A stretch of 64,000 nt of DNA from Penicillus capitatus (GCA_965649825.1 OZ287695.1:1663288-1727287), one strand, 5' to 3'. Counted from the first letter of the stretch, positions 1 to 58,620 are shown. Notes: generated by a model from the letters alone, not told the origin. Made by a program: numbers and translations.

Positions 1-1097
1 AAAACAAGTTCGGCGGAGAACCTTGCCAGATTATCATGGTCATTATGCCGGACTTCGCTGAAAGGGAAGGAAGAAGCATTGTCACGACCGAGGATCTCTA
101 CACAGAAGTCAAAGTGGCTTCTGATCAGCTGGTCGGCATTCCTTCCCAGTGCATCCGAACAACCAATGCAGGACTCGAAGGCAGAGCTGCCGACCACAAT
201 CGCCGTGCGTATGTTGCTAACCTGACGCTGAAGATCAATGCAAAACTCGGAGGCATCAACACGACTCTCTACAATCTGCAGGGCCAACAGCACCGCACAT
301 GCTCCTTCCCTTTGCTGGGAGACAGACCTTTCATGGTTCTGGGCGCCGACTTGACGCATCCACCACCCAGCAGCGAAGACAAGCGATCGGTGGTCGGTGT
401 CGTGGCCTCGATGGATCGAACGCTGTCCCACTATGCCTGTCGGACGCAGTTCCAGGAATGCACGGACACCGGCCGAGAGGTCATCCGAGATCTCAAGAAG
501 ACAGTCAAGGAACTGCTGAAGGCGTACTACGTCAAGAACAACGGAGTCAAACCCGAGGCGATCCTCTTCTACCGAGACGGCGTCTCCCAGGGCGAATTCC
601 CGAAGGTCGTCGAGCACGAGTACGAGGCCATCCGAGCCGCCTGTGCCGAGATGGGAGACCCGTCTGCCGAGTACTGTCCACCCATCTCCTTCATCATTGT
701 CTCCAAGCGTCACGGCATGAGATTCTTTCCCAGCAATTCAGCCGACGCCGACAGATCCGGTAACGTCTGTCCCGGTCTGGTGGTGGATTCCCATGTCTGT
801 CATCCACATGGCTTCGACTTCTATCTCGTCAGCCACACCGGAATCCAAGGCACTTCCAGACCGACGATGTACTCAGTTCTTATCGACCAGGTCGGTTTCA
901 AGCCAGACGATCTACAGTTGCTCACATACTGGATGTGCCATCTTTTCTGCCGCTGCACACGAAGCGTGTCGTACTGCCCGCCAGCATACTATGCGCATCA
1001 TGCAGCAGCCCGTGGAAAACTTCTCTGGACAAACAAATCTCGTAACACGGAGAATGCCGTACACCCTAACTTGGAAGACACTCTCTTCTTTGCGTAA
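1..1097 (+). CDS. AGO: Argonaute, C-terminal MID/PIWI part (5' end lies outside the window)
   Basis: Frame is open from the window start. PIWI motifs GADLTHP, GREVI, FYRDGVSQGEF, HTGIQGTSRP, CPPAYYAH; ends LFFA* as Argonautes typically do. DEDH tetrad intact. Confidence 0.97.
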   Translation, partial: NKFGGEPCQIIMVIMPDFAEREGRSIVTTEDLYTEVKVASDQLVGIPSQCIRTTNAGLEGRAADHNRRAYVANLTLKINAKLGGINTTLYNLQGQQHRTCSFPLLGDRPFMVLGADLTHPPPSSEDKRSVVGVVASMDRTLSHYACRTQFQECTDTGREVIRDLKKTVKELLKAYYVKNNGVKPEAILFYRDGVSQGEFPKVVEHEYEAIRAACAEMGDPSAEYCPPISFIIVSKRHGMRFFPSNSADADRSGNVCPGLVVDSHVCHPHGFDFYLVSHTGIQGTSRPTMYSVLIDQVGFKPDDLQLLTYWMCHLFCRCTRSVSYCPPAYYAHHAAARGKLLWTNKSRNTENAVHPNLEDTLFFA

Positions 1098-33445: not shown

Positions 33446-36400
33446 TCAGGAATTAAGACGCTTCGTCTCATCTCCAATAGGCTCATAAGGAACATTTCCA
33501 CCAGATGCACGATTTGCAGCTGGGGGCTGAGAATCCACAAAGCCGGGTGAGATGTATGCTTCTTCGGGATCGACAGCTGCCAGATCGTAACGATGATATG
33601 AGCGCCCGAATGCAGAATTGATGCGATCCTGAGCACCCTGCACAACAGTACGTACGCCAGGTGCATACTCATAGATCGTCTCGCGCTTTCTGTAAACAAT
33701 AAAGGCAAGGAAGGCGAGGAAGGCGAGCACGAAAAGGACAATGAAGAATGTGGCAACGCCGCTCTTTCCTTTCTTCTTGTGCGGCACATCTTCGGACTCC
33801 ACTTCTGTGTTTGTAAAGAGTCGAGCACTTGAGCTTTTTGCAGAGCTCTGGTCTTCTTTGGGGTCAGAATGAGATCTATCGGATTTGTCTTTATGCGTAG
33901 TGGCATGTCCATGCGTCGTCGAGTCTCCAGAATCCCATTTGTGTTGAGTACAGACGGATGGACTGGTGAGAGTACAGACATAGTCCTTCTCTATGCGGCA
34001 ATTGTCATCGCAGCCATCCCCATTGACGCGGTTTCCATCATCACAGAGCTCGGTTGCTTCCAGAATGCCATTGCCACAATGGTGCATCCAATTAGGCACG
34101 ACCCACTTTGGCTCCGACAGGATTCTGAGAGTATTTCCATGTCCCGTTTCGTCCCTGACCGTGTATCCACTTCCCTCATCGAATTTCCACCACGCCACAA
34201 GATTTGGATCCTTTTTGCTGATGTAGTCGCTTTCGACGCCAGATCCGACGTTCATGTCATGTGTCATCCCATCATAGATCTCTGCACTCGAGCGGGCAAC
34301 ACGCCAGATACGAACCTCTTCAATGAGCCCATAGAAGTCCTGGGGTCCGTACTCCAAATTCGTCACGGCCTGGACATCTCCCGTAGCACCGGGCGCAGAG
34401 TCGAAGCAGCCACCAAGGCAATCCTGCTCGCGTCCAATAACGAGGGTTCCTCCGGCAGGAATCTTCTTTCCTTTGGCCCGAGCAACACGCCACTGAGCGA
34501 TGCCGTTGTCATAGAACACGGCATTTCCCGTTTCGCTCTCCCAGGTGACAGCAATGTGATGCCACTTGCCATCCGTCGAAGAAAATCCTGCGTTGTGATC
34601 ATCTATCGTTCCTTCATCTTCCATCACTGAGATTCCCCAGTTGTTGTAATTGAAGATGAGGAAAGCGTTGTCATTGGACTGGTACTCTCCATGTGCATAG
34701 GAGAACGGCACACCTTCGCGACAGGCATCGATACTCCACATCCAAAACTCGACCGTAATGGCTTCCGATGGAAAATCATGGAAATTACGCAGCATCAGCA
34801 ATTGCTTATCGGTGAGTTCAAGGACGTAGCCCATGTATCCCGGTTTAGGAAGCTCTGCAGGGATACCGTCGGCATCCGACAGGGGTACAGTCGAGAACTG
34901 GAAGGCAGGTGCCACGGATCCAAGTTCGAGATAACGGTTGCCGTTGTCGTCCATGACACGCCGACCACGCTCGACGCTTCCGACGAATTGGGTTTCTTCG
35001 AAGATAAAATTCATGACCAGGCCATCCTTGTTGTCTGGCCTCTTCTCGAACATGTTCTTAACGATCTCACTCTTTGTGAGAACGCGATCCCATATACGGA
35101 CGTTTGCCATGGAGCCATCGTAAGACGAAGCTGGCGAGAAGCAGCCTGCAACGCATTCCTGGTTCTGACCCAGAACCAAAGATCCGACAGCGTCTCGAGA
35201 CGTCTTGGCTGCCAGTTTGTTTGAGACACCCCCATTTTTCGGATCTTCATCTGAGATTTGGCCGTTGGCCGCTCTCCAGAAAGGTTTCACACTTTCTCCA
35301 TCAAAGTAGAGATTCACTTCTCCTGAACTGTGCTTCCATGTCACAGCCAAATGATGCCACTCGTCGTCCGTCCTTAACACAACATCACTCGGTCGTATCA
35401 TGAATCATCCATCCATTGACAGGAACGTACCAATCCGTCGCAAAGTCTAACCAATTGTCGTTCGCTTTTCCGTTTCCTTGACGATTGGAATTGATATGGA
35501 CAGAGACAGAGCCCAAGGTATTGGTCTTGGCGTTCCTCAAGTACTGGGATTCGTTGTATTCCATCAAGTAACGTTCAATTCGAATGGCATCATCGATGAG
35601 CACCGAATCTGCAAAGCCTCCGTCGTTGTCCGTATGCCCATCACCCGGCTGAATGGTTGCATAAGATAAGAACTCGGCGTGCTGTTCACTGGACACTCCA
35701 TGGGAGCGAATTGGTCCACTTCGTGCCCAAAACTCAATCGTGATATCCTCCGAAGGCATGCCCATAATGTTGGGATTAAAGGCATGGTTGTTCTTGAAGG
35801 TCAATGCTCCCGTTTCCATGTGATTGTCTTTCTGTCGGATCATCACATCAGAGCGACTCGGAGGAACCAGCAAATCCAAATGGTTGCCCCGTCCACTGGA
35901 GTCCATCACCGTACCATACTGCTCAAATTCATCTGTTCCTGGATCATCAAATTTCCAGTAGGCGATGAGCGCGTCTCTGTTTGGCATTTCGCCCGTTGCT
36001 AGAAAAGGACTAACCGTTAACAGAAGGAAAGGTGCAAATTGCATCGTACATCTCATAGTGCTCACGATTTCGTCCTGTGAGCGGGCAACGTTCCATATTC
36101 TGACCTCATCCATGAGACCGTAGAATCCTTGTTTGGGATCTGTGCATCCTCCATAGCAATCCTGCTCACCTCCAAGCATAAAGGATCCTCCCGGCTGTAT
36201 CTGCTTGTCGCTTCCGGTCGTGGCGCGGCCAGCCAAACTGCCATCGATGTAGACAAGAGTTTCGCCATCCCTCTCCGAATCCCACGTCACTGCCAAATGG
36301 CGCCACTTACCTTCACGACGGACCAGTTTTCCTGTCGTGGGATTAAAATCCGTCTACAGACAGACATAGAGCGTAAGAGCCGTAGAGTCTGAGAGCAGAG

Positions 36401-42487: not shown

Positions 42488-43750
42488 TCAATTGGAGACC
42501 ATAGACTGAGCCTCCTTGCTAAAACCGTCGCCCGTCCAATCTGAATCCGTCACGAGTCTCTTCTGTGCAGCCTTTTTCTCTTTTCTTAACTTCTCCTGGA
42601 TCTGTACAAGTCTTGCATGTGTTGTGACATATGGCAGTGCTGTTCCTCTGAAGTCTTCAATCGTTTGAAAATCGTGTTTCTGCATAAACGCCTGCAATCC
42701 ACCACAAAGCTTCTGGATCACTCCATAGCCATGCACCATGATTCCTGTACAGACTTGGACAGTATTGGCTCCCAGCAATAAGAATTCGGCAGCGTCTGAT
42801 CCAGATCCAACGCCGCCGATGGCTGAGAGAGATTTCTCCCCTTGAAAATCATTTTGAATCATCGTCGCGCATTTTTGGACATGTGCAAGGGCAATGGGCT
42901 TTACAGCTTTGAAGGAATAACCTCCAGGAGTCGTATAGCCACCGACACTTGGTTGAGGCTTCAGCGTCTCCAAATCCACCCCCATGATCGAAGAAATCGT
43001 ATTGATGGCTGATATCCCACTGCATCCACTGCCAAGAGCTGCACGCGCCGGTTCTCTAATGTCTGTGATATTCGGCGTCATTTTTGCCCAGACAGGAACA
43101 GTCGCCTTCTCGCAAATCCATCTGCTGACTTCCTGCAGCATTTCTGGACACTGACCCATAACCATTCCCATGCCCATCTCCGGCAAACCGTGTGGACATG
43201 AAAAATTGATTTCGATGCCATTCACACCTGTGGCTTCGACGCGCTCAATGAGCTCTTCCCATGCTTCCCTTTTGTTTTTCTCCATGATCGACGCAAACAA
43301 TATGCGATCTGGATACTCGTCCCGCAGTCTTTTCATATCTTCTAGCATAGTCTCGAGGGGACGGTCACTTGTGAGTTCAATGTTCTCCCATCCAACGACT
43401 TCTGCCCGATCTCCAGCATGTAACTGAGCGTAACGTGGGGTCACGTTGTGAATGGCTGAGGCATCGAGAGTCAACGATTTGCAGATGACGCCTCCCCAGC
43501 CTTCATCGAATGCCCGCTTCATCACTGCGTAGTTTGTTCCAGGAGGACCGCTTGCGACGACGAAGGGATTTGGCAGTGTCAGGCCACCCACAGAGACGGC
43601 GAGACTCGGGCCATCGACGGGCACCCCGTTTGAGATCTTCACGGATGGTTCTGGTTGGCGACTGCCGTTTTTTCGCGCCGCGATAATCGTCAGTCGCCTA
43701 GAACGATGAATGCGGAGTGGTTTGTGTGAAATTCTCGCCGAGAGTTTCAT
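42488..43750 (-). CDS. PYD1: Dihydropyrimidine dehydrogenase (plant/plastid type), intronless
   Basis: NPFVVASGPPGTN, GWENIELTSDR, EINFSCPHG, VWAKMTPN, SAINT, TPGGYS, VQVCTG. Confidence 0.97.
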   Translation of the reverse strand: MKLSARISHKPLRIHRSRRLTIIAARKNGSRQPEPSVKISNGVPVDGPSLAVSVGGLTLPNPFVVASGPPGTNYAVMKRAFDEGWGGVICKSLTLDASAIHNVTPRYAQLHAGDRAEVVGWENIELTSDRPLETMLEDMKRLRDEYPDRILFASIMEKNKREAWEELIERVEATGVNGIEINFSCPHGLPEMGMGMVMGQCPEMLQEVSRWICEKATVPVWAKMTPNITDIREPARAALGSGCSGISAINTISSIMGVDLETLKPQPSVGGYTTPGGYSFKAVKPIALAHVQKCATMIQNDFQGEKSLSAIGGVGSGSDAAEFLLLGANTVQVCTGIMVHGYGVIQKLCGGLQAFMQKHDFQTIEDFRGTALPYVTTHARLVQIQEKLRKEKKAAQKRLVTDSDWTGDGFSKEAQSMVSN

Positions 43751-52020: not shown

Positions 52021-52420
52021 TCAAATGCCATCCATACAGCAAACGCCACAAGCAGAATGTTGCCCAGCAGAAGGAGCTAGTCCGTTCTGAACCAGACCAA
52101 GGGTCTGACTCTGACCAAATATGTGAATTAGGCGGACGACTCGGGGATGGAAGTCGTCGTCTCTGCCAAAACGCGTGCGTTCGTTATTGTCGCACAGCGG
52201 CGGCTTGTGCAGTGGCCCTCCCGCTGCACAGACGCCTCCAAAGGAGACGTCAGGAGGACGGATTCGCGTACGGACGCAGAGGAGAACGGCGAGACCGGCC
52301 TGGCGCTGGAGGAGACGTCGGGCGAGTTCGAGTCGCCGCAAGACCCAGGGCGTATGCGTCCCTTTGGCCGAGTGGCCGCCTCCGAGAACGCAGATGGCGT
52401 CGTCGTCGTCGCGCGCCCCA
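52021..52420 (-). pseudogene. DUF218 (YdcF/ElyC-like) gene, apparently degenerate
   Basis: DAICVLGGG..PWVLRRLELA, GGPLHKPP and LVQNGLAPSA are recognisable, but the usual E..S.DTIGNA and TS.FH segments cannot be recovered intact. Confidence 0.55.
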
Positions 52421-52657: not shown

Positions 52658-53961
52658 CTATCTGCCGGAACGCATCGCCTTCTTTGCCTCTGCCTCGCTC
52701 AGATTGGGAGCCGTTTTCAGCAGGCGACGCAGGACGTGGTCGGGAGCCGTCTTCCCGTCCTGACGCCTCTTCTTCTGGGAGGGGTCGCTCGATGCACGGC
52801 ATGCAGCATCCTTCCCGGAGGACGAGACCTCGGTCGTCGATTCGACGGCTCTGTGCCTCTTCACTGCGCCGCCGTCTTGCGCCCGGCGCTTGGGAGCGAT
52901 GCCCAGTCTCGTGATGTCGTTTCTCTGATCCTGCAACACGTTCCTGAGATCGATGGCATGGCGCATCACGGCGTGGCGCTGCTGGATTTCTGGATCCGAC
53001 AAGCTCTCCACGTGGACGTGCATCGCAGCCGAGATCAGGCTCTGCAGTCGGGGGATGAGTCTCTTGTGCATCGACTCGAGCGATTCCAGGAGATACTCCT
53101 CCACGGCCGGATCCATACACTCCACCTCCTTCGGAGGGATATCCTGAAATCCGTGTTTCCCACCCGAACCTGCCTGGTCAGTGCCCTCCTTGGCAGCTTT
53201 CTCCCTGCGGCGGAACAGCTCCTGTTTCGAGGACACGGGCAGGTCGTCCCACTCCACGGAGCACTGCTCGTGTAGATCAAGAGCCTCTGTGATCTGCGTT
53301 CTCACGCGGTGACATTCTGCGAAGAGCTCGTTCTTCTGAGACAGGGCCCGGCGGTATGCTTCCTGCTGTCTCTCCCTCGACCGAATCTCGCTGAGGGGCA
53401 CATACGGAGCCGAGCCGTCCGGCAGTGACAGTTTCAGATTCTGCTCGACGTGATGACAGGCCATCAGAATCTGGGTAAGTATTCCCTACTAAGCTTCTCG
53501 CCAGCATGCGGATGATGCTTGCTCACCTCGGGATAGAGGTGACCAAATCGGCATCTCCACGTCGCAAGCGCGTAAGTCATGCGATGTTCCAGGTTCTCTA
53601 GCGTTTCCGCGGACATCGACGGTCCACTCGGTGCATCTCTGATGCAGCAACAGTTCACGAGTCGTTCGAGTCGCCACGCAGCGACGCGGCGAAAAATCTT
53701 CGAGCGAAGGAAGAATCGGTCAACCAGGTCCAACGTGTGACACCTTGTCTGCACACAACGTGTTTGTTATCCCTGTATCGGCCGACGTGCCTGCGCATCT
53801 GGAATCTGCAACTGTGTTAAGAGTGCGTCAGCGACCGCCTCGGCCTCGGTGTCCTCCCTTGCCGCTTTGAGGTAAGATGTGAGGCGGTCGCAACTCTCCT
53901 CCCTGAGCGCGAACGAAGTTGCTGGGCACGTGAATGTTGAGACCAGAGATTCGACTTTCAT
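52658..53961 (-). CDS. UVSSA: UV-stimulated scaffold protein A homolog (transcription-coupled repair), apparently C-terminally truncated
   Basis: VHS-like LVDRFFLRSKIFRR..WRCRFGHLYPE, central AIDLRNVL..RLGI, RRLLKTAP; stop at 52658 precedes the expected zinc finger. Confidence 0.72.
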
Positions 53962-54153: not shown

Positions 54154-54504
54154 CTACAGCCGCAGCGCTTCATTTGACAGGCATGTTAGGCTATCTAGAG
54201 AACACAGGTTAGCGTAGAAAGGGATAATGACGGCGACTACTTCTCTACGACCCATTCTGTTGCGGACCATCACCACGGTGCCGGCAATGATAGTAGCGAC
54301 AACCACTCCTCCACCGAGGCGTTCAAGTACTTTTTTCTTCGAACCGCGACGGGCAGACATGCTGCAGGCTCCACACGACGCGTCACAATGGTTACAGCCA
54401 CAGGGTCCGGAGTAATCAGCCGATGGGTTCCCCGATTTACATCTGCACTCCGTAGGACACGCACATCTTGTGTCACACTGGCCGGCGGAGCAAACGCAAC
54501 GCAT
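54154..54504 (-). CDS. Small Cys-rich (metallothionein-like) protein with a C-terminal TM helix
   Basis: AAAATG start; 12 Cys within the first 47 aa; basic patch RRGSKKK; TM GGGVVVATIIAGTVVMV; probable 57-nt intron with a GCTAAC branch site. Confidence 0.7.
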   Translation of the reverse strand: MRCVCSAGQCDTRCACPTECRCKSGNPSADYSGPCGCNHCDASCGACSMSARRGSKKKVLERLGGGVVVATIIAGTVVMVRNRMGRREVVAVIIPFYANLCSLDSLTCLSNEALRL

Positions 54505-54687
54505 TTTTAAAAGGTATTCGGAAAGCCGTAAGTTTGAAGTCTGAGTTGTGTCCAAAAACAGGCGATGCGACAAAACAAAACAAATATGGCGAACGTGTGT
54601 TATGTTCGTTCTCACCAAAGTTCTTAGAATTTAAGGTTTCAATTTAACGATCTGACGTGTCCATCCGTCGTTTCACCCAGAAGGTGT

Positions 54688-55425
54688 TCAGGTGAAGCGA
54701 AACGGTAGTTTGTCTCCAGGGCGCACTTGCATGGTATCCCCCTTCCAGTCGTAGAGCGGAGGGTCCGTGCCGTCCTTTTTTCCTAACAGCACAGCCTAAC
54801 AGGGCATGAGAACCCTGCTCATCCATGACACTACCTTTTGCTGCATCTCATGAAGTTCTCCTACGGCTGTTTCTTCTTGACCGGTTAGGGAAACCGTCTC
54901 AGAGGCCGCTGCTGCAGTGGTTATGTGAAAGACCGTCCACTGCGGTGAGCTGTCCACAATCCGTTCCTGCATCTCTGTCGTCCATGTTCGATGGAAGTCT
55001 TGTGGAATGGTATTCCACAGTGCCTCGATGCCGGAAAGGCTATCGAATTCCAACTCCAGCTACATAGCGACACTTCATAGTCGATAGCCGGCACGGGATG
55101 GACTTCAATTCTGGACTCGGGGACTCCAATGGCTCCATGTAAAATCTGAGGAGACGCGTGGGCGAAAACGGCTGTATGACGGGACACTTCCTGAACCCAC
55201 TCGTTCAACAGTTCTAGCGCCTCTTGTTTGCGGCCAAATCTGCTTTACAATGTCAGATGTGCAGGAGATGGCGACTGCGAACCTGGCATCGAAGGACCAT
55301 CGCGCCTTGACAGCGTTCTCGACTCGTAGAAACCGCCGTTGAGGGCGACGATTGAGAAAGCGTCGTCTGGAAAACAAAGGGACGCTTCTTCGACCCCGAA
55401 CCGCGGTTTGCTGCATGATGATCAT
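54688..55425 (-). CDS. Organelle-targeted protein, putative NIPSNAP-like dimeric alpha/beta barrel
   Basis: Spliced RWSFDARFGRKQEALELLNEW..HGAIGVPESRIELELEFDSLSGIEALW..VDSSPQW; last exon DWKGDTMQVRPGDKLPF. Confidence 0.6.
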
Positions 55426-56834: not shown

Positions 56835-58344
56835 ATGATGCGTCAGGCGTTGTGGCGTTCACGAGACTGTTTGCCGGGCATGGGCATGAAATTGTTGGGC
56901 ATCCGTGGTGTCGCCACGGCGAAAGCGCCCGTCGAAGAGTTTACGTTTACGGTGATATCAATTCGCATCCGCCCCGACGGTAAGGGCTCGATAGGAACGG
57001 TGTTGTCGATAGGTGCCGGAATTCAAGGGACATCGTATCGACCCTCCAGGAAATAGCGTCACGACGACAAAGGAGGAATTGACTGAGACATTGCGCATGA
57101 TGGCCTCCATGCGTTCCATGGAACTGGCGGCGCACAAGCTCTATCAGAAGAAGCTCATTCGAGGATTCTGTCATCTCTATGATGGACAGGAAGCAATTGT
57201 GGCCGGCATGGAACGCGCCTTGAACAAGAAAGACTCGGTCATTACATCCTACAGAGACCACTGCACACACATTGGCCGTGGTGGTACCGCCAAGGAAGTC
57301 TTGGCCGAGCTGTTTGGACGAGCTGATGGATGTTCAAGAGGTTTGAAATGTCACATCATGTGTTATCTTATGGCTGAGGATGTGACAGGTGTCGGAGGAT
57401 CCATGCACATGTATAAGAAGGAGCATAACTTCTATGGTGGATGCGGTATCGTTGGGGCACAGATTCCATTGGGCGCTGGCCTGGCCTTCGGCCACAAGTA
57501 TCGAAATGACGGCGGTGTGGCTGTGACCATGTCAGCTCAGAAGAGTCATTGGGTGTATATGAGATGGAGTTCTTCCTAGGTATGGAGATGGCGCAGCAAA
57601 TCAGGGACAGAAGTACGAGGCGCTTAACATGGCTGCGTTGTGGAAGCTACCTGCCATCTTCGTTTGCGAGAACAACAAATTCGGTACGGATGCAATCTGT
57701 TTTGGCTGAGCAGTAGACAATCATCTGTTTTCAGGAATGGGCACGGCAATCATTCGTGCAGCTTTTGAGCCGAACTTCTATAAGAGAGGGGATTACGTTC
57801 CCGGTATCTCTTGTGACGGACAGAACGTGTTGGCTGTCAAGAGAGCATTCCAGTTTGCTAAGGAACATGCGCTGAACAATGGCCCCATCGTCATTGAGAT
57901 GGACACCTATCGCTACCACGGTCATTCAATGTCGGATCCTGGCCTGACTTACCGTACAAAAGTCGATGTCGCAAAAGTCAAACAAGAAAGGCAAGGTCGT
58001 CACGGAGTCATGCCCATGGGGAGTTGGATTGTCATGAAGGGATCCCATCACGCAAGTCAAAGACATGTTAGAAACGCATGGTTTGATGTCGGAAGTGGAG
58101 ATCAAGGCCATCGAAGTCGGTGCCAAGAAAGAGATCGATGCCATCGTCAAAGAATGCGAAGTATCATGCCGGCGGCGCAGCACCTTCCATTCTCACACTC
58201 TCTGTCTGTTCCTAGGCAGCTCCATTTCCTCCGGGAGAATGGCTCTATCGCAATATCCTTAAGAACCCATCGCCGGCGACGGTACGGGGCACCGATTTCC
58301 GCACGCAGCGTCAGATCACTTATGATCCGACCTACACCACTTGA
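56835..58344 (+). CDS. PDHA1: Mitochondrial pyruvate dehydrogenase E1 alpha subunit
   Basis: [52 protein letters not shown]. Confidence 0.97.
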
Positions 58345-58620
58345 ATGGCCGACCGGAGAACCGTGCGTTGCGTGTTTGGGCTGATTCAAAATGTGTATTG
58401 AGACAATGGCATAAGTGAAATGAAATTAATTGTGGTCTACGAGTGTCATCGAGCGTCGTTGTTTCCTTACAGCATCCTTCCTTCTACAAGGCTTCAATCG
58501 TTGTACGTTTGAATGCCGCTGTCTCATTCGAATGATTCCTTTTCATCTGAGACATTCAGATTCATTGCTCCAGATCGCAGTCTAAAGGGAAAGTTAGGAA
58601 GGCAATGCAACAGGATGGTA

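Follow-up and report, generated by a model that had tools for sequence, protein, structure and literature searches.

A metallothionein-like head on a predicted tail anchor, in a small gene of Penicillus capitatus

The cysteine-rich locus

The minus strand of a 64,000-nucleotide stretch of Penicillus capitatus DNA (OZ287695.1; the whole of this analysed stretch is called the window in what follows) carries at 54504..54154 a complete open reading frame (ORF) whose translation joins an extremely cysteine-rich head to a single hydrophobic helix near the C-terminus. As judged from its sequence and from those of its relatives, this ORF encodes a genuine and previously unannotated small gene. Its features are as follows (TM, transmembrane; UTR, untranslated region):

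54504..54154, minus strand: complete ORF of 116 codons, with the ATG at 54504-54502 and the stop codon TAG at 54156-54154
54241..54504, minus strand: exon 1, codons 1-88, comprising the Cys-rich domain, basic linker, TM helix and basic patch
54361..54504, minus strand: metallothionein-like domain, residues 1-48, translation MRCVCSAGQCDTRCACPTECRCKSGNPSADYSGPCGCNHCDASCGACS
54319..54360, minus strand: basic juxtamembrane linker, residues 49-62, MSARRGSKKKVLER
54265..54318, minus strand: TM helix, residues 63-80 (18 aa), LGGGVVVATIIAGTVVMV
54241..54264, minus strand: basic patch past the helix, residues 81-88, RNRMGRRE
54195..54240, minus strand: candidate 46-nt intron, GTAGTC...GCTAAC...TTCTCTAG
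54186..54194, minus strand: candidate exon 2, ATA GCC TAA (Ile-Ala-stop), giving a 90-aa product
54154..54194, minus strand: rest of the unspliced ORF, coding solely if the intron is retained and otherwise 3' UTR

Twelve of the 48 residues of the head are cysteines (25%), arranged in four CxC and two CxxC motifs, and they are accompanied by one histidine and by a single aromatic residue, Tyr31. They form an N-lobe of seven cysteines (C3xC5x4C10x3C14xC16x3C20xC22) and a C-lobe of five cysteines plus the histidine (C35xC37xH39C40x3C44x2C47), which are separated by a 12-residue inter-lobe linker, KSGNPxxxYSGP. The helix is devoid of Cys and has a mean Kyte-Doolittle hydropathy of 2.25; the strongest hydrophobic 17-residue stretch of the whole protein falls within its residues 63-80. 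The N-terminus (MRCVCSAGQCD) is polar, and no N-terminal signal peptide was seen on inspection. An earlier note, made from this DNA alone, had described exactly such a protein, and the translation of 54504..54154 reads as it was quoted there (12 Cys, four CxC, one His); the basic linker, the helix of about 17 aa and the RNR that the note placed after the head are likewise found, the helix having 18 residues and being followed by RNRMGRRE.

The cysteine density of the head is exceptional within the window. In a six-frame scan its 12 Cys were the maximum for any stop-free stretch of 48 residues, the runner-up having eight, and in 20 shuffles of the window the best stretch contained between 6 and 10. 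A second copy of the gene was not found within the window by tblastn.

Relatives, constraint and the 3' end of the gene

Relatives were sought in two ways, with a word-indexed search of 5.8 billion proteins and with HMMER, run exhaustively against 1.84 billion cluster representatives. The word-indexed search returned only two truncated prokaryote-style ORF calls, both from the same long-read ENA assembly (ERZ25074695). One of these, P0001, comes from a contig (L002) with 99.5% identity to the window across 19.8 kb, which is of the same species or possibly represents an allele; the other, P0002, comes from a contig (L001) of a sister genome, with 81% identity across 3.8 kb. The HMMER scan added one further relative, a paralog (P0003, at the locus L003; E 1.5e-20, 43% identity), which the contig of P0002 carries about 35 kb away from it. 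A profile search with the alignment of these three sequences gave nothing new, and no family members outside this lineage were found in the two protein searches or in a scan of the JGI metagenomes. The four loci that the metagenome scan did return are all off-frame within bacterial methyltransferase-like or sigma-factor genes and were discarded. Also discarded, as spurious, was P0004, a 931-aa ankyrin protein (E 8.7e-6) that matches only residues 76-104, which are hydrophobic and read-through tail sequence.

The ortholog of L001 (9920..10270) is a complete ORF of equal length, 116 codons, with the same stop and 70% amino acid identity. It retains all 12 cysteines, and although 8 of the 12 Cys codons have been swapped between TGT and TGC, there are no changes at their first or second positions. 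Over codons 1-88 the window and L001 have 64 nucleotide differences, distributed 12/15/37 among the three codon positions, and the ratio of nonsynonymous to synonymous substitution rates (dN/dS) is 0.18 for these codons and 0.14 for residues 1-48; in codons 1-30 the synonymous sites are saturated. When the observed substitutions were placed at random, all 12 Cys were kept in 0.026% of the trials (P = 2.6e-4), and in 100,000 trials there were never as few amino acid changes as the 24 observed (P < 1e-5). The ATG is preceded by an A at -3 in all copies and the frame upstream of it is interrupted, by an indel of 1 nt and in L001 also by a TGA in frame; the Cys domain is therefore the true N-terminus. 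The window and L002 do not differ at all in codons 1-88 and differ once in the candidate intron (54200 C>T, within the pyrimidine tract). There are also no differences between them in the 245 nt 3' of the candidate intron, and the eight single-base differences in the 150 nt before the ATG are clustered within 120 nt (54533-54653).

The paralog is a far more distant sequence and has kept the same design. It retains 12 of 12 Cys, His39, Tyr31, the Gly and Pro positions of the linker, the hydrophobic helix and the basic patches on both of its sides, and it has 13 Cys in total. Since the identity of its non-Cys residues has fallen to 40%, a level at which the chance of retaining all 12 cysteines is about 1.6e-5, it is the architecture itself, and not just the sequence, that is under selection. 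Outside the cysteines the three genes share in the head R2, G8, K23, G25, P27, Y31, P34, G36 and S43, in the helix G65, G66, V68, A70, I72, A74, G75, T76 and V78, and in the basic patch R81, R83, M84 and R86. In the basic linker of the paralog only 3 of 14 residues are identical, yet its basic character has been retained. The family holds at least two old paralogs (43% identity), and the conservation of the cysteines, of their spacing and of the membrane helix, for which the earlier note had proposed to look, was borne out in both the ortholog and the 43%-identical paralog.

An antisense ORF on the plus strand (54227..54415) was considered as the cause of this constraint, and was rejected; it shares the wobble positions and is about equally conserved. 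In all three loci this frame ends at the Tyr31 codon, and it therefore leaves the constraint on codons 1-30 unexplained.

The 3' end of the gene is best understood by comparison of the three copies. The earlier note had proposed a product of about 97 aa after splicing, which is not supported because the necessary donor is absent in the relatives: in the 57-nt in-frame intron (54251..54195, donor ATGG/GTCGTA, the slash marking the junction), the GT of the donor reads GC in L001 and AC in the paralog, and this intron was rejected. The unspliced ORF has 116 aa, and the comparatively supported spliced product has 90. The candidate intron of this latter product directly follows the basic patch and is exactly 46 nt long at the same position in the window, L001 and L003, with the donors GAA/GTAGTC, GAA/GTAGCC and CAA/GTAACC and with acceptors made of a pyrimidine tract and TAG; the intron sequence of the paralog is otherwise unalignable with that of the other two copies. 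Removal of the 46 nt leaves two codons and a stop in each gene (IA-TAA, VA-TGA and AA-TGA), and the predicted spliced products have 90, 90 and 96 residues in the window, L001 and the paralog, with tails of 10 residues. Without splicing the tails differ greatly, being 36 residues in the window as against at least 70 basic residues in the 169-aa ORF of the paralog, which lacks the second, weak hydrophobic stretch seen in the ORF of the window. The unspliced codons 86-116 evolve neutrally (dN/dS 0.98).

The intron sizes of this genome were taken from the PDH E1alpha gene of the window (57013-58390), checked against human PDHA1. The gene has five introns, with weakly conserved donors:

57341-57388, plus strand: 48 nt
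57531-57579, plus strand: 49 nt
57684-57734, plus strand: 51 nt
57991-58039, plus strand: 49 nt, apparent GC-AG
58161-58215, plus strand: 55 nt

The spliced product can be aligned over its full length to human PDHA1 (E 9e-111), and none of the five junctions introduces a gap. As these introns span 48-55 nt, tiny introns are normal in this genome. An ab initio histogram of the GT..AG pairs that link long open frames had a flat profile and did not inform on the length of introns. The conserved position and length make it quite probable that the 46-nt intron is spliced to give a 90-aa protein. The helix is near the C-terminus with or without this splicing.

The surrounding sequence

The window is eukaryotic and gene-dense, with about 50% G+C and very short introns. 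A gene on the same strand ends upstream of the ATG near 54650-54690 and another begins downstream near 53961, both without any Pfam domain; further out are PDH E1alpha, a DYRK-type kinase and an Asp-type tRNA synthetase. These neighbours give no functional hint. The 3' end of the upstream gene (54663-54722, minus strand, ...DGTDPPLYDWKGDTMQVRPGDKLPFRF...) has a 7-nt indel relative to L001, because of which the C-terminus or the last intron of this gene differs between the two genomes.

The upstream regions of the paralogs share two short words and are otherwise unalignable. The first is an 8-mer, GACACGTC, which precedes the ATG by about 150 nt in each gene:

54654-54661 of the window, minus strand: 8-mer at -157
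L001 9768: 8-mer at -152
L003 9852: 8-mer at -149

A second 8-mer, CGCTTCAC, is shared by the window and L003 at -195/-194. GACACGTC overlaps the end of the upstream gene in the window and in L001, and it is possible, if weakly indicated, that it represents either a cis element common to the genes or a remnant of homology.

In the sister genome the two paralogs lie within a segmental duplication of the contig ctg340362_28x (L001 6529-14299 versus L003 7917-14395), whose copies are about 35 kb apart. The flanks of the duplication are 92-94% identical, but the metallothionein-like gene segments within them are unalignable at the DNA level (43% at the amino acid level), and L003 is without the upstream gene that is found in L001 and in the window. 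The cause could be either that a recent duplication or gene conversion took in paralogs that were already old, or that the core was replaced. About 2.5 kb downstream of each paralog there is a cysteine synthase gene (CysK-like, TIGR01139, E 6.5e-82):

L001 12791-14142, minus strand: cysteine synthase
L003 12883-14234, minus strand: cysteine synthase

This gene is missing from the syntenic place in the window (the junction is near 52185-52189) and from the whole of the window. The proximity of a cysteine synthase in the sister genome hints at a local thiol/metal module.

Several other genes of the window deserve mention. An Argonaute Piwi domain (36-1097, plus strand) has its closest named relatives among the chlorophyte algae, at no more than 49% identity, and matches Logan/ENA contigs at 57-96%; an algal affinity is weakly indicated by these relatives. 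A DHO_dh-family ORF of 420 aa (42488-43750, minus strand) carries at its N-terminus a basic extension, rich in Ser and Arg, that resembles an organelle transit peptide, and it is reminiscent of the plant plastid dihydropyrimidine dehydrogenase. Finally, two adjacent ORFs (33446-36296, minus strand) contain pentraxin/LamG (Laminin_G_3) repeats together with a Cys-rich repeat of the DUF4215 type and, at the C-terminus, a membrane helix; this pair looks like a large surface protein.

Function, rival explanations and known systems

No curated family describes this protein. At E<=10 the window and L001 proteins matched no Pfam family at all, and the only match of the paralog was that of its head to Metallothio_5 (E 0.018; 15.6 bits against a cut-off of 25). 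There was no match in NCBIfam and, in sequence and profile searches of the PDB at E<=10, no metallothionein chain or zinc module was matched. The sole similarity in the PDB is a non-significant one (E 0.1-0.3) of the helix to the solved single-span helix of APP (GGVVIATVIVITLVMLKK). The resemblance of the window helix GGGVVVATIIAGTVVMV, followed by RNR (54265-54318), to this APP helix is striking to the eye, and presumably reflects a convergence of Gly-zipper single-span helices. No Rfam family occurs anywhere in the window.

Metallothioneins have 15-30% Cys in CxC, CxxC or CC motifs and few or no aromatic residues, and the head agrees with this in composition (25% Cys, one Tyr). They are also soluble, and here the protein departs from them, as an 18-residue segment with a grand average of hydropathy (GRAVY) of 2.25 is conserved in the three genes. 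The features of a tail anchor are present: a single TM segment lies near the C-terminus (residues 63-80, followed by a tail of 10 aa if spliced and 36 if unspliced), and inspection revealed no N-terminal signal sequence. Since the searches with profile hidden Markov models and of the PDB gave no significant match, we place the head outside the curated metallothionein families while describing it as metallothionein-like in composition and spacing. The claim of the earlier note that no described family has this combination holds for Pfam, NCBIfam, the PDB, the two billion-scale protein searches and a literature search, in which no natural membrane-anchored metallothionein was found. It is fair to describe the protein as a metallothionein-like head on a tail anchor, and such a protein is without a described counterpart.

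The protein would be tail-anchored and cross the membrane once, with a length of about 90 residues if spliced, or 116 if unspliced. The net charge is +5 over the 15 residues N-terminal to the helix in the window and L001 (+3 in the paralog), and +3 to +4 in the tail after it. These flanking charges, along with the lack of a signal peptide and the very short tail, suggest that insertion occurs by the tail-anchor route and leaves the head in the cytosol. The cytosol is a reducing compartment, and for this reason the 12 Cys and the His are far likelier to be metal ligands than to be engaged in disulfides. The 48-residue domain would adopt its fold by binding soft metal ions (Zn2+, Cd2+ or Cu+) in thiolate clusters, its lobes CxCx4Cx3CxCx3CxC and CxCxHCx3Cx2C resembling the cluster-forming segments of metallothioneins, and it would hold, buffer or hand over metal at one membrane surface rather than throughout the cytosol. 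That the head is a cytosol-facing metal-thiolate domain tethered to one membrane is a proposition in which, from the conserved features of the three genes, we have a moderate degree of confidence.

The helix has a conserved small-xxx-small face, GG-x3-A-x3-AG (G65/G66, A70, A74/G75), which suggests that it is not a passive anchor but pairs with itself or docks to a partner membrane protein, possibly a transporter. As to its destination, a tail charge of +3/+4 shifts mammalian tail-anchored proteins toward mitochondria or peroxisomes (PMC5450235). For the organelle surface that the earlier note proposed the indications are mixed, since the TM segment has a GRAVY of 2.1-2.25, within the range of yeast tail-anchored proteins of the endoplasmic reticulum. 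The boldest interpretation, a hitherto undescribed family of natural tail-anchored metallothioneins with a Cys12His head kept permanently on the cytosolic face of one membrane and a helix that pairs with itself or with a transporter, serving spatially restricted buffering or hand-off of metal, can be offered only tentatively.

A number of observations weigh against these interpretations. No Metallothio_* model reaches its gathering threshold for any of the three proteins, and both the conserved Tyr and the conserved membrane helix are atypical for metallothioneins. The AlphaFold2 prediction for residues 1-88, made with no alignment, has a predicted local distance difference test score (pLDDT) of 52.5 and is uninformative. 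There are only three independent sequences, all from one lineage; the collections searched contained no transcript, and the protein collections no spliced or full-length product. Moreover, the nucleotide identity of the window and L001 is 77% in the ORF and 75-90% in the flanks, and because the flanks match the level of the ORF this identity by itself proves nothing. A structural zinc module, or a domain binding another cofactor, is also conceivable.

In the structural zinc-cluster or adaptor alternative, the Cys12His domain would bind Zn only in order to fold, in the manner of the Zn3Cys9 cluster of CXC and pre-SET domains or of other small zinc modules, and would recruit a protein or nucleic-acid partner to the membrane without any part in metal buffering. 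The invariant non-Cys residues and the fixed length of the inter-lobe linker point more to a folded module than to a metallothionein, whose structure is plastic, but the list of invariant residues is inflated by the sample of three sequences. The N-lobe spacing CxCx4Cx3CxC, which we take to be like the start of CXC domains, is a lead only: none of the three Cys domains matched a TCR/CXC (PF03638), pre-SET or zinc-finger model of Pfam at E<=10, nor was there a PDB sequence match. We consider this alternative unlikely.

A membrane-tethered Fe-S or redox sensor, a functional analogue of mitoNEET/CISD1, is improbable. MitoNEET/CISD1 is a 2Fe-2S protein of the outer mitochondrial membrane with three Cys and one His as ligands, and the hallmark of its family is the CDGSH motif with this 3Cys-1His ligation. 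The C-lobe CGCxHCxxSCxxC could supply such Cys/His ligands, His39 is invariant and the cytosol-facing membrane tether would be an analogous architecture. However, the motif C-D-G-[SAT]-H is not present in the sequence on inspection, there is no Pfam match to the family, twelve Cys are far above the need of an Fe-S site and their CxC density is typical of thiolate clusters.

Little credence can be given, either, to an extracytoplasmic, disulfide-rich head, inserted N-out in the type III manner and forming with six disulfides a small knot at the surface or in a lumen, as a miniature of the diplomonad VSP/CRMP proteins. The Cys count of 12 is even, and the C-terminal TM segment with its basic tail resembles the [KR][KR]X[KR][KR] and CRGKA tails of those proteins, which are also rich in CXXC and CXC and have a C-terminal TM helix with a short basic tail (PMC3916229). 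The diplomonad proteins are, however, large, extracellular type I proteins that bear signal peptides and come from a very different lineage, as against the approximately 90 aa of the protein here (PMC3916229). The protein has no signal peptide, its flanking charges in the window and L001 (+5 before the helix and +3/+4 after it) go against an N-out orientation, the 10-residue tail implies post-translational tail-anchor insertion with a cytosolic N-terminus, and the Cys count of the paralog is odd (13).

A membrane adaptor of the cysteine-string type, in which the Cys would be sites of poly-S-acylation (palmitoylation) rather than metal ligands, was the alternative offered in the earlier note and would account for a Cys-rich cytosolic segment near a membrane helix, but it is very improbable: acylation strings are generally contiguous and tolerant of changes in spacing, and here the Cys are 16-60 residues away from the helix, while their CxC/CxxC spacing, which includes a His, is strictly conserved. 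Least credible of all is that the ORF is non-coding, whether as a frame open by chance within conserved DNA that encodes no protein or as the antisense image of a gene on the plus strand; the flanks are conserved like the ORF, the antisense frame is open across sense codons 31-88 in all three loci and no transcript is known, but this can hardly be reconciled with the 12/15/37 bias among codon positions, with saturated synonymous sites in codons 1-30, where the antisense ORF is absent, with the improbability of keeping all 12 Cys (P = 2.6e-4) and that of having no more than 24 amino acid changes (P < 1e-5), or with a 43%-identical paralog of the same architecture.

If the protein is, as we favour, a metal-thiolate domain tethered to the cytosolic face of a membrane, then cells can confine thiolate-cluster metal storage or hand-off to a single membrane surface, and the gene would offer a compact and ready-made means of capturing metal with a surface tether. 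The case also shows how short intron-containing protist genes escape annotation, as only truncated prokaryote-style calls of this one existed.

Among known systems it is the metallothioneins that the head most resembles. It shares with them the CxC/CxxC spacing, the two Cys lobes with a Cys-free linker between them, a single conserved His and an almost complete lack of aromatic residues; plant Ec and bacterial metallothioneins similarly use Cys plus His. By analogy, the head probably works like a metallothionein, via Zn, Cd or Cu thiolate clusters. The nearest metallothionein model is Metallothio_5 of Pfam, reached by the paralog only and below the cut-off. Metallothioneins are, however, regarded as freely soluble buffers, and those displayed on membranes have mainly been engineered fusions for bioremediation, whereas the protein described here carries a conserved TM helix, basic flanks and a conserved Tyr.

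The same logic, a small metal-binding domain on the cytosolic face of a membrane, is found in the farnesylated, HMA-domain HIPPs of plants and in mitoNEET/CISD1, but their folds and ligand motifs (the CxxC of HMA; CDGSH) are unrelated to those of the protein here and their anchors (a prenyl group; an N-terminal helix) are different. To our knowledge, the only natural family of Cys-rich tail-anchored proteins is CYSTM, which has its Cys inside the membrane. The CYSTM proteins (PF12734; Digitaria CDT1, yeast YDL012C and Arabidopsis PCC1) are small Cys-rich tail-anchored proteins of eukaryotes for which metal chelation or redox buffering at the membrane has been proposed; they have 5-6 Cys within the TM helix, including a run of consecutive Cys, an acidic residue after it and a Pro/Gln-rich disordered cytosolic head (PMC2804304). 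Like them, the protein described here is small, tail-anchored and rich in Cys. It is nonetheless not a CYSTM protein, since its helix is without Cys and is followed by Arg, all of its Cys are in the head and there is no Pfam match; CYSTM is simply the closest natural Cys-rich tail-anchored family.
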